Positions 38,202 through 46,880 are shown, numbered from the whole stretch's first letter. The stretch: DNA of 63,538 bases, filler included, from Pelomyxa schiedti (GCA_020536535.1; 12 parts of 12 records of this genome joined end to end with filler, not necessarily neighbours in it); one strand, 5' to 3'. Made by a program: numbers and translations. The notes: generated from the letters alone by a model not told the origin.

Positions 38202-40147
38202 TCAAAAGAGGGAAAAAGCAAGAGCAACCAGCAGGGCACTAGCTAAGTGGTATTGGACAGAAGAGCCCACAGAGAGGGAATCAGTCCCTGATGCTGATGA
38301 TACAGAACTGGAGTTGCTGGACATGAATCCACTTGGGTTGGCTCGTGAAGAGGCGTAACCATCAGTACGGCACTCAGTGTAGTACGTTTCGAAATTAGCC
38401 CCATCAGGATACACAAAGCAATCACCNNNNNNNNNNNNNNNNNNNNNNNNNNNNNNNNNNNNNNNNNNNNNNNNNNNNNNNNNNNNNNNNNNNNNNNNNN
38501 NNNNNNNNNNNNNNNNNNNNNNNNNNAACTGGAGTTGCTGGACATGAATCCACTTGGGTTGGCTCGTGAAGAGGCGTAACCATCAGTACGGCACTCAGTG
38601 TAGTACGTTTCGAAATTAGCCCCATCAGGATACACAAAGCAATCACCACAAGTGTCGTCTGTGCATTGCCATGGTACAATAACCCCTTGTTCGTCAGACC
38701 ACTGGAAGTAGCCCCACAGGTTGTTGTCAATGAGTGTGCATGCTGCATTTGTAGTGTATTTGATGGTCTCAGGTGTCCCTTCACAGTCGGCATTGGCCCA
38801 TGTTGCAATCCATCCCGGCCTTATTAAAAATAAATAAATAAATCAGGAAACAAGTTGGGAAAGGCAAACTCACTCTTCTTGGAACCAGGCATGAACCTTG
38901 CTGTCGAAGTCATCAGTAGTGATACAGCAGTAGCCGTTGTTCTCAGATCTACAGTTCATTGTGGAATCCGCGGCCCAGCAATAGCCAGTATTGGGACTTG
39001 AGTAGTAAGAGGCCGAGACGGTGATTACATCTTCGGTGCAAGAGTCATCTGTGAATTCGGCATCCACGTACACATAGGTGAAGTTGCAATCACCTCCGTC
39101 ATAGTTGCATTCCTCAATGTTACAGTTAGGGTCACAGTCCAGATCACCAACGTTTGACAGAGAGCACATGGCCGCGCCACCGCAGTATGTGCCATCTGAG
39201 AATCGTAATTACTTTTGAAAGAAAGGTAGAAACAGTGTGCATACTACAATCGGCGTCATCCCAATTGCACAACTCGTTGTAGCACCCAGATTGGCATGTG
39301 CCATCGCCGACCTGTGTCTCCAGGCACCCGAAGAAGCAGTACCCTTCAAGAGCCGCATCACAGTCACCATTGTCCCAATTGCATGCCTCTGTATAGCAAG
39401 AGGTGTCACAGGTCCCGTCACCGCGGTCAACACTGGTAACGCACCCAGGTGAGCACATATCTAGTAAGGAAGAGTTCAATTTAAATGATAGTTACAAAGG
39501 AAAAATCAATGTACCGTTGCAGTCACCTAGATCAAAGTCACATTCCTCAGTGTTGCACTCCCAGTCACAAGAGTCGTCCCCAACATCATCGGCACTGCAG
39601 CCTTGGGCACAGTTGAGATATACTTAAGAAAGTCAGTAAAATCTCCGGGTTAAAAAAAAAGGAGCAATACAGCAGTCTCCGTCATCAAAAAGGCAGTCAT
39701 CGTTGGCGCATTCAAGGTCACAAATACTATCACCCCAGTCAGCCTCATCACAAGTCCAGTGGCCACAAGCCGAAACGCCACAGTCTCCAGAATCATAGTT
39801 ACAGGCTGCTGTCATGCACCATGGGTCACAGTGCCCATCCCCGATATCGGAGGCAGAACAGCCAGCGTTACAGAGGCCTGGGGTTGAGAGAAAATAAGTA
39901 TAGGTTGAATGACGGTTTTGTTTTGTGGTTGTGGGTGGGGGTTCATTGCATATGAGAAATTGTGGATGAACAGTGCAAAAATACCAGCACAGTCTCCGAA
40001 ATCCCAATTGTTTCTGGCATTGTAGCACTCAATGTCGCAATTACCATCGCCGAGATCGGAAGACCAGCACTCGGAGGACCATCCCTCATACGCAACCGCA
40101 AAGCCCACAAAGCCAAGTAACACAATAACGTGTTGTTGGTGCGTCAT
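38202..40147 (-). CDS. Secreted, GPI-type protein with about 7 LNR (Lin-12/Notch) repeats
   Basis: Signal peptide MTHQQHVIVLLGFVGFAVA; repeats C-x(3-5)-C...GDGxCDxxCxxxxCxWDxGDC; Ser-rich linker and hydrophobic tail YHLASALLVALAFSLF*. Confidence 0.85.
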
Positions 40148-40612: not shown

Positions 40613-42276
40613 ATGTCTACGTCGCGGATCAATATCTACGTTGTGGGACGAGGACACGCTGGCAAGTCTTCGTTCTTGAACGCGTTGTATAAACACATGA
40701 CCCAAAAGGTCCTTCCCTTTTAATTTTCGTTGACTTTATACGCTGCCAAATTGTAAATTTGTTGTCTGTTAATTTAATCATTCCATCACTTGTGGCTTAC
40801 TGTATGGCTGTTGAAGAGTGTGGGACCGTTTCCAGTGATGACTGAGACAGCTCGCGGAACAATACATCTGAGAATTGTGGGGCTGGATATTACTAGGACA
40901 AGACAGCAGATTAACCTGTGTGATACGGCTGGGCTTCAGTTTACTCCCACCTCATGTGCTCGTGACTACGAAATTTTGGAGAAAATAGCTCAGGGTCTGC
41001 CGGCTAATCAGGATTTACTTGCTGATGGCATAAATACCGTCGCACCTGTTGTGGAAAATGCTCCTTCTGTAAGTTGGTGGGAATTTTCCACATTTCTAAT
41101 CATCAACCAAGATATTTTTGATGGTTGTTCGAGCTGATATGTTGCACTTTGAGAAAGTTTCTGGCCACAGAGTGCTAAAAGCGGAAGACCAAACTTACAT
41201 AATTAATTTGAAGAAGCACATCTCAACTATTATGAAGCACCAGGAACCTGCTTTGATAGTAACTTGTTGTGACAAAGTCAATGTATGTATTTTTACCTGT
41301 ACTTTACACTCACCTTCTGCAGGATACCAATCTTATACAGAGCGCACTAAGCTCCATCTTTTATGCCAACCGAGGTTTAGCATTTCAAAAACAAAATTTT
41401 GTTCCATCTTACACTGTGCAGTTTTCTTGTTTGGGCAGAAAGAGAACCCAAAAACCAAAGAAGTTTCACTTGACCCCAAATACACCCCAAACCTTGATAC
41501 ATTGATCCAGCTGTTTACTTTAGGTGAGATGCCAAATAAACGCGTTCTATTACTAATGTTTGGCAGTTGTTCCCGCAATAGTTGCCAAGCCAACCAAGGC
41601 AGTGGAACCCACAACACCATCTCATCCCTCGAATCCCCCACCTCGCCCCGAGCAACCTACTGAAACAACACAGACAACAGAAGGGCCCCAACATCCCCCT
41701 CCTCCCCCTACATATATCCAGCAGCCCCCACAGCCCCCACCCAACCCACAACCAAGCCCATATCCTCCCGGAACACTTGTGGATCAATGGGGAAACTTAG
41801 TCTATCAGCAGCCCCGGCCAATGCCCCCATACCAACCCAACCCCCAGCCACCCCCCGGTATGTATGGCCAGCCATACTACGGCCCCCCACAGCCGCAGCC
41901 CGGAGCCAGAATAATAATCAACGGACCACCACCCGGTGTGATCCGGACATACAACCCACCACCACAGCCCGGTGGCCCCATGTACTACACCAACCCAGGG
42001 GGACCCTACCAACCCCCTCCGCAGCCCATGGGCTACATGCCCGGGCCTCCCCCGGGCCCCGGCGGGCCGTATTCCCAGCCCCCAGGGGGGAGCATTATCT
42101 ACAACAACAACAACGGGGGCCCCTACTCGCAGCCGTCACAGCCGCAAATGTACTCGCGGCCACCACCTCCTCCCGGAAGCGGGCCGTATCAGCAGCCACC
42201 TCCCCCGCCTGGGTTCACTAACATGCCTCCCCCTCCTAATACCTGTGCCTATCCACCTCCCCCTCCAAACTACTGA
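40613..42276 (+). CDS. P-loop GTPase (IFI44-like arrangement) with a Pro/Gln/Tyr-rich tail
   Basis: G1 INIYVVGRGHAGKSSFLNAL, G3 LCDTAGL, strand IFLMVV, G4-like LIVTCCDK; about 230-aa tail ending YPPPPPNY*. Confidence 0.7.
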
Positions 42277-42450: not shown

Positions 42451-45400
42451 TCACCACGGACATGAGACAACAGTAAATTCAACAAGGAGCACAGAGGAAT
42501 TCAGTGACATTACAGCGAAGTGGTTCAATTCGGTCTCTGATGTCCTTCCATAGTTTAATACACACCTACATCCAACAACCACAACCGGGTTGCGATTTCC
42601 TCCCTCTGTGCTAGTACTGCTGTTATTGTTATTATTCCCTATGAACTTTGCTCTGGCTTGGACCCGGTAGGTTCCGGGAACGGCTTTCCTCAGTGTATAT
42701 TCAAATGGACCCAGTCCCACTGGGCTTGTGCCGGATAGCCTTCCCCCAATGGATGTGTGGTTGTGCCACGGGCTGCATAGTTCTCCGGAGGGCTCAGATA
42801 CACTCAATTCCACATCGGAATCGCTGCTGGTGGTCCAGAGAATGACCCTCAGGTCTAATTCCACTGAGTTCTCTTGGTCCCAGCTGTGCAATAATGGTGA
42901 AAATGATGATGCGGAGGCCGCGGATGATTTGAGGGATAGGGTGTGTGATAGAAGGTCTAGTTTAGCTGTTACTTGAAGGCCGAGGTACTTTGGACCACCG
43001 CAGCTTTCACCAGAGGAAAGGGATTGTAGGGCCGAGACAGCGGAAAGTATTTCTTGCTTTTCTATACCTGAACCTCTGAGGGAAGCTACTGCAGTGTGGT
43101 AGGAGTACTGTAGCAGTGATTTCCGGAGTGCAAAGGCGGCTTTCCATGCTGTCAGGGCCTGTGTCCACAAACCTAATGCCTGGCAAACTGTAGCCATGAT
43201 GCCAAGAGGTTGCATTTCACCAGGAGAGTGCTCCGCAATGTTGCTAAGAATTCTGTAGGCATCCTCACTGCTTCCAATAGATAGAATATGAAGAGCACTC
43301 CCTATAATAAAGGCACAAGCGGATTGGCCTGATTGAATTATGTATTCATAGAGCTGGCGGTACTTCCGCATCAACGAGTCTCCAGTTTCTCCAATTCCTT
43401 GGTGGGAGAGTAAGTTGCTACAAGTTGGAGCACACTGAGTAGAAGAGTGTAGTTGATACTTCAGTACCCTCTGGTTGTCTGGGGAACTGAGTTCAACAGA
43501 ACCGGTCATTGATGGAACCATTGATCCCGGAGTGAAGACGTCACGGCGGCGTTTCACAGGCAAAGCTACAGTGTCTTCCCAAGGGAAACTATAGTTTTCC
43601 GGGAGAGAGTGCGATACTGTCGAAGTGACCCGGTTTTGTAGCAGAGCCCGGCGTTCTCTTTCTAGAGCGGCTTGGGAGATAGCAGCTCGTTGGAGGGAGC
43701 CATCAGGATTCTGGACTAATTTGAACTTGTGCGCTGTGTGGAACCTGGGGGTTTCTCTTCTCACTGCAATGGAATCCCCCAAATCAACACTCACTTTCTG
43801 AAGTTCGGAAAACGAAGTACTAGTTATCTCTTCAGGCACAGTTGGTAGTTGAATCCTGCTTCCCATGGGAGCTGGAATCTTATCCCAACGGGAGAGTACT
43901 ATAGGCTTGCCTGAAGGCGGCCGTGGCGTGCTTGAATCCCAGGAGGGCCTTTTGTCAGTATTTTCTATTTCAATTTCCGCAGATGGGTCCCTCTTTTCGC
44001 GAGCCGCCATCGTTGGTTTCACGTAATCAGCCATGGTGCATTGCCAGGACTTCTTGTTCAAGAAGTTAAGGTGTGCCCGATCGTCAATGTCTTGTTTCGT
44101 TCTATCTGAAAAGGTTTTCAAATCAGTAGCACCACGTCCAATTGGAGTGGCTGCGGCAGGTGGTCCGCTGGAAAGAGGTGCACTACCACAAACACCATGA
44201 AATGTATGTGACAGTCGCCTGAAAGCTGGCATGGATTGCGGTGGAGGGATAGGGGGCATGCCAGGTGGTCCCCCAGGTGCCATTCCATAGAGTATTCCTG
44301 GAGGCACTATAGGAGGCATTCCTTGAGGCGAGAAAGAAGGTAATCCAGTTGGCATTTTGGCTGCAGTCCCATAGGGGGGAGTAATGAACCCACAAGCACC
44401 CTCATCTAATGACGGATATTTACCCAAATCCCGAATGGTAGTTTGGAGTTCAGCCTCATCGAATTTGAAACCATGTCCTGCGTATCCATACGATTGTGAG
44501 GGTGTCTGCATCTCCCTCGCCTCTCGTAGTATTTGTTGAGCTGTAATTTGCACTGGTGCTGGTGCTTTATTTTTAGCCTTGCTCCTTGGAATGAGATCTG
44601 GGGCGAAATCTGACGGATAGTACTTGTGGAGTGGAACATTACGTCTGACAACTTGCTTGGGTGGTTCTTGTATTTCCTTCTCAACGAAGGAATCTTGAAG
44701 AGGTTGGGTTATTTGAAAGTGCAGGAATTCCGGATGGGGTGTTTTCTCCTGATATTCAGTTGTTGCCCATTTCAGAAAATTCTTCCACAGTATTGCGGCA
44801 ATGTATCCAGCGCGGTCTTTTTGTTTTTCTTGGTTATAGTTCGCCTCATGAGCTTGTGTATTAGTTATGCGCCAATATTCAGCATGAAGGTTGGGAACAG
44901 AGAGTGGGGGTGAAATTTTGTGTGTCAAATACTGATCAAGAGTAAGCAGTACCAAAAAGGAGAACCCTTCTCCACATAGATTGTAGGTTCGGCACAGAGC
45001 TAAAGTGTTGCTTCTATTCCTCTGGAGCTTCTCAATTTCCATGAGGGCCCACCTTCTGCCAATAATGGTTCCAAACTGATCCTCATAGTACCTCGACTGA
45101 CAAGGAAGAGAAAAGGGTACTCTCTGATCAATTCCGCAAGATGTAAAATCCACCAGAAAGCTTGCTGATGATGCGCTCGGATTTAACTTACCATAAAGGA
45201 TGTAGGGCTCAAATGGTGACACATCTGTCTGTGAAACACTGGCGCAGCATTTCTCCAAGGTGATCTTGGGATTCGAGGTTTTTGCTAGGAGATATTCCAC
45301 TGCCTCTTCAGCATTATATATTGAGAGGTTTACGCATTTCCCAGAATTTCGTTGCGCCACNNNNNNNNNNNNNNNNNNNNNNNNNNNNNNNNNNNNNNNN

Positions 45401-46880
45401 NNNNNNNNNNNNNNNNNNNNNNNNNNNNNNNNNNNNNNNNNNNNNNNNNNNNNNNNNNNNTGGCGCAGCATTTCTCCAAGGTGATCTTGGGATTCGAGGT
45501 TTTTGCTAGGAGATATTCCACTGCCTCTTCAGCATTATATATTGAGAGGTTTACGCATTTCCCAGAATTTCGTTGCGCCACTTTCCGGAGGAAAATATCA
45601 CTATACTGTGAAGTCGCAGCGCTGTTAAATACGCAATGAATAGCACAGCCAAACGAAAGATGATCATCCGAATTTCTCATGGATAAGGAGTCAACTCCAT
45701 CAGAAAATAAAACCCAATAGGCATACTCTCCTGCCTTGGCTTGACACCAGGTAGCAAGTCTGGCGTAGTCAGTAGCTCCAGTATAAAGAAGAGATGAAAG
45801 TAGGTCACCAACAGTCGCCTGCTGGAGGTCATCAGCCAGTGAGTGCACATCAACACTAAAAGAGAATATGTCAATGCGAGCGGGTGTTTGTTGAAGAAGG
45901 GCTTCAATCACTGCTATTTCTGATGAATGTGAGCCTTCTGCTCTGCTGTAAGAAGCGTCCCAGAGAATGCCTATTCTACTATTGTCCTCTGAGTAGCTTG
46001 TGGTCTGGGGCAGGATTTCTGGGTGCGTGGTGCAGGCGCACATAAAGAAGAGCTCTGGGTCTGGTGTGTCACCCAAGGGTCTCGAAGATTCAACTGCGAT
46101 GTAGTACTGAGGTACGTCAGATATAAAGAAGTCGAGAGGATCCAGAAGTGCAAAAGAATCTGCTCCTTGGTCTATTCTAAGAGAAGCTTCCATCCAATTC
46201 CCTTGGTTAACAAATTGAAGTACGGACGAGACAGGGTGCACGTTTGGCGTAATCTCCCTATTTGTTTCATTGTCTAACACACAGTCCACTCTTGCGTGCA
46301 TTTCAACCGTCCTCAAAGTACTGTGGGAACGCAAGCTGAATGGCAATGCGTAAAAGGAGCTGTGTGACTCCTTCTCGAACCTCATCTGATGTGTATACCG
46401 TACGCAAATCTATATGCGAAAATATGTTAGTTCTCATAAGGGGCAGAAGCTTGCCTTACTTTAGTAAGTTGACCAGGTCTGATTGGGAAGACTTTGCACT
46501 TGTATATATTAGAACTAGCCACACTAGAAGAAATGGCAGCCGCAGAGCCAGAGTCCCTCTCAGCCTCATAAGCAACTGCAGCAGCCTCAGTCTCAACTAT
46601 AGAGGCCTCTCTCATAACCCCATCAACCTCAATAGAATATCCACACACAGTACCACCACTAGGCAGAGGAACAACAAGGGAACCCTCAATGCACCCAACA
46701 GAATCTGCACAACCATTACTTGCAGTTGCAGTTGTTGGTGATGCAATTGCAATAGCTGTTGCTGATGTCACTGTTGACGAATAAGAAGAAGGGGAAGGAC
46801 AACAAGAAGAGGGATTATGGGACGATAGCAACCAAGACATCGAGAGCAGGGTCTCGGCCACGATGGTTCCCACGACCCTG
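42451..46880 (-). CDS. VIT-vWA-TPR-DUF2135 protein with an inserted spliceosomal-motif cassette (5' end at scaffold edge)
   Basis: VIT EGSLVVPLPSGGTVCGYSIEVDGVMREASIVE...VFPIRPG; vWA IGILWDASYS...LFSDGVDS; FLVLLTLDQY..HKISPP; TPR AYRILSNIAE; DUF2135 DLRVILW...DVELSVSEPSGE...IGGRLS...GPFEYTLRKAVPGTY. The two ORFs join across an overlapping gap. Confidence 0.85.

Follow-up and report, generated by a model that had tools for sequence, protein, structure and literature searches.

A spliceosome-peptide loop in a eukaryotic VIT-vWA-TPR-YfaP_C protein of Pelomyxa, possibly a bait for foreign factors

Why should a protein of bacterial-type architecture carry, inside one long loop, a string of peptides resembling proteins of the spliceosome? 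The question is raised by a gene on the minus strand, at 42451-46879, of the 63,538-nucleotide stretch analysed here (the window: 12 parts of 12 records of the Pelomyxa schiedti assembly GCA_020536535.1, joined end to end with filler; the 9-kb part holding this gene is called the piece). A first-pass annotation had read the product as a complete bacterial-type VIT/vWA/TPR/DUF2135 protein whose linker holds segments of six spliceosomal proteins, and had proposed that it acts as a guard or decoy. We compared the window protein with P0001 (Pelomyxa schiedti KAH3761393.1), which was treated as its orthologue in an independent assembly, and with a larger set of relatives. The comparison supports four spliceosomal sources for the loop, and the contents of the same loop in related proteins suggest that it may serve as a display of bait sequences.

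The loop, or cassette, lies at 43525-44655 on the minus strand and comprises 377 residues (piece residues 236-612), 12.5% of them proline. It is predicted to be disordered: in an AlphaFold2 (AF2) model based on a multiple sequence alignment, the predicted local distance difference test score (pLDDT) stays below 50 over piece residues 220-616, apart from a helix in the Crn-like island and a hairpin with a helix in the DHX8-like island. When the window cassette alone was searched against the PDB, it matched DHX8 residues 449-513 (E=4e-4) and, in several species, the peptide at the N-terminus of CRNKL1/Clf1/cwf4 (E=3e-3 and weaker), with noise setting in from E~0.8. A profile made from the window and P0001 cassettes gave 12 matches at E<=10 among 177,635 distinct PDB sequences. 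Since all 12 are spliceosome proteins, belonging to four families, the resemblance is not a chance pattern. Read from the N-terminal side, the first island is PLHKYYPSDFAPDLIPR (44584-44634), similar to the N-terminus of Yju2. Its sole Pfam match is to positions 1-20 of the Saf4_Yju2 profile (E=0.027; the P0001 island gives the same match at E=0.09), and the PDB profile search placed it on YJU2 residues 6-25 (E=0.11); searched by itself against PDB and Pfam, the stretch gave no relevant match. The adjoining island (44506-44586, beginning KAKNKAPAPVQITAQQILREA) is like the N-terminus of Crooked-neck/Clf1/Syf3. Here the PDB matches are to the CRNKL1, Clf1 and cwf4 proteins of six species, at E=1e-4 to 4e-3 (CRNKL1 residues 11-39), about two-thirds of the aligned residues are identical to human CRNKL1, and the predicted helix covers residues 274-284. 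Further on, the island GRGATD..T.SD...QDIDDR (44077-44163) resembles the Prp6 N-terminus (PRP1_N), with a PDB profile match to PRPF6 residues 13-50 (E=0.023), and its P0001 counterpart matches positions 1-33 of PF06424 PRP1_N above the cutoff (E=7e-8). With these two matches, the segment formerly assigned to Prp5/DDX46 is most likely derived from Prp6 instead. The island closest to the C-terminal end of the loop, 66 residues at 43567-43764, is like the linker of DHX8/Prp22. It matched DHX8 in the two-sequence profile (E=0.025), is 50% identical over 50 residues to the DHX8 N-terminal fragment P0094 (library-wide E=3e-15), and contains the predicted hairpin and helix at 546-579 (pLDDT 53-72). 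P0094 comes from an ENA metagenome contig of 1393 nt and has an exact internal tandem duplication of ~128 residues, probably an assembly artefact, that inflates its E-value against the window island.

Three of the six sources first proposed, namely Yju2, Crn/Clf1 and Prp22/DHX8, are therefore borne out by PDB or Pfam matches. The assignments to Cwc25 (NFLNKKSW), SF3B1 (SRWD) and Prp5/DDX46 are not, as no PDB or Pfam match at E<=10 was obtained with the stretches alone or with the two-species profile. The Cwc25/Cir_N-like island LNFLNKKSWQ (44020-44070) is conserved with its source unconfirmed, and the SF3B1-like stretch RPSWD...SRWDK (43876-43953) is neither confirmed nor conserved. Another conserved island, SYGYAGHGFKFDEAE (44449-44493), is duplicated in P0001 (residues ~765-810) and has no Pfam or PDB match and no detectable source protein. 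It may resemble the second of the motifs conserved in the N-terminal region of Prp6, though it lies upstream of the first. No relevant PDB or Pfam match was seen for the proline-rich stretch, and a KRRR motif stands at the loop end. It may be noted that Pfam finds in the window protein neither HAT repeats nor a DEAH helicase core, and that the zinc-binding region of Yju2 and the TPR/HAT body of Prp6 are missing as well, so the claim that the spliceosome-like segments share one frame without the folded or catalytic domains of their sources holds for the whole 377-residue open loop. Taken together, the sequence matches support four spliceosomal sources: the N-termini of Yju2, Crn/Clf1 and Prp6, and a segment of DHX8/Prp22. 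The E-values of individual islands are modest, and the case lies in their concordance over two species, two libraries and four protein families.

Comparison of the window protein with P0001 gives the islands a history. Identity between the two is 55-70% in the islands resembling Yju2, Crn, Prp6 and Cwc25 (11/17, 12/22, 14/24 and 7/10 positions, respectively), while the overall divergence of the proteins is roughly 40-47%; the remaining loop keeps only 41 of 145 positions (~28%), with 118 additional gap columns. In the SF3B1-like stretch, 5 of 13 positions are identical and there are 13 gap columns, and the DHX8-like island is absent from P0001, where 5 of 31 positions agree. As the conserved islands are shared, the cassette must be older than the split of the two species. 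On this alignment the islands look like short linear motifs under selection, in a loop whose content still turns over.

Could the loop instead be a product of the assembly, through the joining of unrelated contigs or the merging of gene models? The piece does have two runs of 100 N, one of them inside this gene, and some Pelomyxa gene models rely on many predicted introns. The gene runs on the minus strand through a 970-codon open stretch from 45360 to the stop codon at 42451-42453, and a second open stretch lies upstream of the N run. The 121 nt at 45461-45581 are exactly those at 45240-45360, on the other side of the gap (45361-45460), so this gap is not biological and represents two overlapping contig ends that were left unmerged. 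Collapsing the overlap keeps the frame and gives a coding sequence of 4155 nt (1385 codons) with no stop, truncated on its 5′ side where the piece begins or ends; the first ~30 residues of the protein lie outside it. The collapsed protein is collinear with P0001 residues 31-1374 and runs smoothly across both the intron junction and the gap. Moreover, the gap lies ~700 nt upstream of the cassette, and the cassette with both its flanks sits inside the single uninterrupted 970-codon stretch. The same cassette occurs in the same order within one uninterrupted 1245-codon open reading frame (ORF) of the independent P0001 assembly, and a Trinity transcript and an uninterrupted metagenomic ORF share the architecture. 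A chimeric origin is extremely improbable on these grounds and is effectively refuted by the single ORF of P0001 together with the continuous 970-codon stretch.

The remainder of the gene model identifies its domain of life. Exon 1 (46460-46879, 5′ end cut) encodes the protein's beginning, with the larger part of the VIT domain, as seen from the Pfam VIT match and from collinearity with P0001 residues 31-150. It is followed by a 50-nt spliceosomal intron at 46410-46459 (GTAAGG...CTAAC...TAG), the removal of which joins frame 1 to frame 0, and by the part of exon 2 upstream of the gap (45461-46409), which holds the end of VIT and the vWA domain. Because of this intron, because the closest relatives are archamoebal, and because a neighbouring gene with LNR repeats is also split into exons, the sequence indicates that the gene is eukaryotic. 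A bacterial gene is ruled out by the intron and the eukaryotic neighbours.

The scaffold that carries the loop was then assigned domain by domain. The VIT domain matches PF08487 above the cutoff (E=1e-12). The Pfam match of the vWA domain is below threshold (VWA_CoxE, E=6e-4, 19.7 bits against a cutoff of 26.4), and its metal-ion-dependent adhesion site (MIDAS) is intact, with DxSxS present as DASYS at 45945-45959, followed by GATD and FSDG, all in columns conserved in the family alignment; the vWA region also runs collinear with its homologues. After the vWA domain and N-terminal to the loop, the region 44716-45273 is modelled as a beta-sandwich with long helices (AF2 pLDDT 60-97) and is homologous to bacterial and archamoebal relatives. 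The C-terminal 330 residues have no direct Pfam PF09906 match and only weak TPR matches (E=0.07-0.16); AF2 models them, at a pLDDT of 84, as a TPR superhelix followed by an eight-strand beta-sandwich. The TPR-like helical repeat domain (42883-43428, pLDDT 85-97) is matched by Foldseek to the peptide-binding TPRs of MamA, IpgC/SycD and OGT, and TPR Pfam models are matched by 29 of 73 aligned homologues. The beta-sandwich (42463-42864) is a homologue of DUF2135/YfaP_C: PF09906 is matched by 61 of the 73 aligned homologous C-termini, though not by the window copy, and residues 833-912 of the window protein align at E~1e-20 with proteins that match it. The DUF2135 and TPR assignments of the window protein thus rest on homology and fold, not on a direct model match. 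NCBIfam and PADLOC scans of the protein returned no informative family. The order of the scaffold is VIT, vWA with MIDAS, helical region, TPR and YfaP_C; it is of intracellular type and its family is otherwise mainly bacterial. The domain order first described was accordingly right, as VIT, MIDAS, fold and homologues show, while the bacterial label fails for an intron-bearing eukaryotic gene.

If the scaffold is common to bacteria, is the loop as well? A phmmer search run exhaustively over 1.84 billion representative proteins gave 1374 relatives, nearly all of which match the flanks only. Word-indexed protein searches with the cassette, the N-flank or the family alignment gave nothing useful, and since they missed P0001 although it was present, they are uninformative; of the 356 matches from a metagenome scan with cassette patterns, none was confirmed. 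In the 150 best relatives, the distance from the N-flank to the C-terminal match is mostly 89-160 residues, with a minority at 250 to ~1450. Bacterial VIT-vWA-TPR-YfaP_C proteins (~1000 residues) have the same domain order and homologous flanks (E about 1e-17 to 1e-23), but they are encoded by stand-alone genes and have a short linker or a CarboxypepD_reg domain where the window protein has its 377-residue spliceosome-peptide loop and its gene an intron. At the loop site itself, bacterial-type members carry CarboxypepD_reg or nothing. Complete bacterial-type metagenomic ORFs (n=42) encode 964-1160 residues, the linkers being 89-137 residues in the 6 that were measurable. The window protein is therefore a divergent eukaryotic member of the bacterial VIT-vWA-TPR-YfaP_C superfamily, and its cassette is not ancestral there, which agrees with the first-pass annotation. 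Metagenomes contain over 390 relatives of this bacterial-type scaffold (loci L010-L089).

That annotation had further asked whether linkers of paralogues carry other mimic cassettes, and this is what we found. Reading the long linkers by Pfam and PDB searches revealed other host-protein pieces at the same site in at least 10 Pelomyxa paralogues, one Mastigella transcript and metagenomic relatives. Among the Pelomyxa proteins, P0002 carries SKIP/SNW1 residues 237-270 (1e-11) and the KH-QUA2 region of SF1/BBP (1e-28), P0054 a G-patch and MFAP1, P0003 and P0005 actin, P0092 a tubulin fragment, P0033 a J-domain with a weak E2 match, P0065 Snf7 and PH, and P0077 FYVE. A synaptobrevin SNARE motif is combined with Rab1/Ypt1, starting from switch I and with no P-loop, in Pelomyxa P0040, where the switch II Gln is replaced by Asn, and in the Mastigella transcript P0016. 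P0135, encoded in JGI metagenomes by an uninterrupted 2344-codon ORF on four contigs, has histone H3 residues 20-59 and a VAMP SNARE motif, and P0038/P0157, from a eukaryote-like 135-kb metagenome contig, has a weak SKIP match. Many of these pieces lack elements needed for their native activity; actin and Snf7 are inserted at nearly their full length. The loop frames are open over 377 to ~1450 residues. On these sequences, one surface loop, placed between the helices that follow the vWA domain and the TPR, has become, in Archamoebae and their metagenomic eukaryotic relatives, an insertion site for conserved host-protein pieces.

Some details of individual loops may be added. The Rab1-like pieces (P0040 ~1044-1180 and P0016 ~865-1010) are without beta-1, the P-loop and alpha-1, and switch II of P0040 reads WDTAGNE. 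The P0135 loop is ~1450 residues long (L006/L007 128-7162). The Mastigella eilhardi Trinity isoforms P0016, P0153, P0154 and P0155 differ by a 20-residue loop segment (P0154 1372-1391), possibly a micro-exon subject to alternative splicing.

A tree of the C-terminal region sets 11 insert-bearing rows apart from 62 bacterial-type rows (support 100/99) and unites the window protein, P0001 and P0002 in a spliceosome-themed clade (100/100). Being unrooted and having several rows on long branches, this tree is no more than compatible with a single eukaryotic origin of the insert-bearing members. The varied inserts could also have gathered without any function, exon shuffling or templated repair having left pieces of exons or cDNAs from strongly expressed genes in a permissive surface loop. 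Such a neutral mosaic would account for a disordered, indel-tolerant loop, for abundant housekeeping genes as sources and for the turnover of content between relatives. It would not account for islands two to three times better conserved than the loop around them, nor for frames that stay open over such lengths, and themed cassettes (three different ones with spliceosome pieces only, another with Rab and SNARE pieces of vesicle traffic) are unexpected under random capture. We consider a neutral origin improbable.

An explanation that takes the themes into account is that the loop is an integrated bait or decoy display for foreign factors, which from the sequences we judge well possible, if short of probable. 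It is suggested by the combination of islands having specific sources, their conservation, the disorder of the loop and the varied, often crippled, host pieces at the same site. Foreign factors, be they proteases, modifying enzymes or binders sent out as effectors by intracellular bacteria or viruses, would meet in the loop the sequences that they recognise on the genuine spliceosome proteins. Engagement of the bait might simply soak up the foreign factor, as a sponge or trap. Alternatively, it might alter the scaffold, perhaps by releasing the vWA MIDAS or the peptide-binding groove of the TPR, either of which could be occupied in cis until then, and so report the event. The paralogues would guard other hubs in the same way: the cytoskeleton, vesicle traffic, ubiquitin and chaperones, ESCRT and chromatin. 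Effectors of intracellular bacteria repeatedly target Rab1, actin, tubulin, SNAREs, E2s and histone H3. Pelomyxa harbours intracellular prokaryotes (PMC10579272).

Known systems offer partial parallels to such a bait. Plant NLR integrated decoys (RRS1-WRKY, the HMA domains of RGA5/Pik-1) likewise combine a conserved scaffold with pieces resembling host targets, often incomplete, that vary among paralogues at a fixed site. The window protein and P0001 differ in giving no NB-ARC, LRR, TIR or CC match (Pfam, NCBIfam) and in having no known helper partner; also, an NLR decoy is one folded domain, whereas a bait of the present family is often a series of short linear peptides drawn from several members of one machine. 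With the bait region of alpha-2-macroglobulin/TEP proteins the window protein shares the idea of an exposed, variable, protease-accessible loop in a large multi-domain protein, but by Pfam it has no MG domains or thioester (CGEQ), its beta-sandwich is of the YfaP_C type, and no alpha-2-macroglobulin linkage is seen in the loci examined. The connection to alpha-2-macroglobulin loci drawn in the first-pass annotation accordingly failed: two annotated bacterial contexts had no such neighbour and 35 loci had no recurrent neighbour. ITIH heavy chains, PARP4 and VWA5A similarly begin with VIT and then a vWA with MIDAS; the window protein is without ITI_HC_C, PARP and BRCT, and its C-terminal half is a bacterial-type TPR and YfaP_C. 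We know of none of these three with integrated fragments of host proteins. As for the source spliceosomal proteins themselves, the window loop shares with them only segments of 17-66 residues, placed side by side in an unrelated protein. By analogy, the family is closest in logic to the plant NLR integrated decoys and more loosely to the alpha-2-macroglobulin bait, and is a member of neither.

Several points weigh against a bait function. The conserved islands are equally expected of peptides that bind native partners. Two of the six sources claimed at first (Cwc25, SF3B1) are unconfirmed, and some Pelomyxa gene models (e.g. P0003) depend on predicted introns. Pfam, NCBIfam and PADLOC recognise no signalling, enzymatic or death domain in the scaffold, so that the guard or decoy function first proposed, although it fits the family pattern best, is an inference with no read-out domain to go with it. 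No conserved neighbouring gene exists among the 35 bacterial-type loci. To our knowledge, the spliceosome is not a classical effector target. The scaffold has no assigned role even in bacteria, where YfaP continues to be classed among uncharacterised proteins (10.1101/2025.03.20.643886).

The first of these points leads to the main alternative, an endogenous one, in which the peptides bind the native spliceosome partners and either tether the protein there or compete with Yju2, Clf1, Prp6 and Prp22. The protein would then be a regulator, an assembly chaperone or a quality-control adaptor, and its paralogues would be addressed to actin filaments, microtubules, SNARE/Rab membranes, ESCRT-III and chromatin. 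The islands are indeed short extended peptides of their sources, three of them from the extreme N-terminus, and are conserved between species; near full-length actin and Snf7 inserts could co-polymerise with the native proteins; the vWA MIDAS and the TPR are generic protein-binding modules; and the KRRR at the loop end could, judging from its sequence, serve nuclear import. Docking of this kind is harder to reconcile with the crippled inserts (Rab1 without its P-loop, in one case also with Gln changed to Asn, SNARE motifs without an anchor, an H3 tail without the histone fold) and with a DHX8 island found in one orthologue and not in the other, and the need for one scaffold at so many unrelated machines is hard to explain. 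On balance we regard it as rather unlikely.

The surroundings of the gene were also inspected. The second 100-N gap (38427-38526) is likewise flanked by an exact 121-nt duplicate, the overlap being one k-mer length and the true sequence continuous. On the minus strand at 38870-40147 lies the multi-exon gene with several LNR (Notch/Lin-12) repeats (PF00066, E down to 7e-11), which appears to continue across that gap. An ORF on the plus strand at 41560-42276, GC-rich (0.54-0.64) and strongly C-skewed, encodes a low-complexity protein rich in Pro, Gly and Gln that has no Pfam match. It is convergent with the VIT-vWA gene, their 3′ ends being ~175 nt apart.

Full-text literature searches, the coverage of which is incomplete, found no description of such proteins, and the Pelomyxa genome paper mentions no such fusions. 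We know of no counterpart to the multi-protein peptide loop in the bacterial superfamily, nor in ITIH, PARP4 or VWA5A. Going beyond the single loop, and with somewhat greater reserve, we think it possible that Archamoebae hold an unrecognised repertoire of innate immunity, in which diversified paralogues of one scaffold would carry themed baits for each host machine and trap or detect effectors; the window gene would be the first spliceosome guard, and one that uses short linear peptides instead of a folded decoy domain. If the bait reading is true, the logic of integrated decoys would extend to a scaffold unrelated to NLRs, in free-living and symbiont-bearing amoebae, the cells in which intracellular pathogens naturally train. 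One could in that case read from the loops which host hubs come under microbial attack in these cells, and the spliceosome (Yju2, Clf1, Prp6, Prp22, SKIP, SF1, G-patch/MFAP1) would be predicted to be among them. Whatever the function, these proteins are a natural example of themed multi-protein peptide display, and they provide a first functional handle on the VIT-vWA-YfaP_C family.

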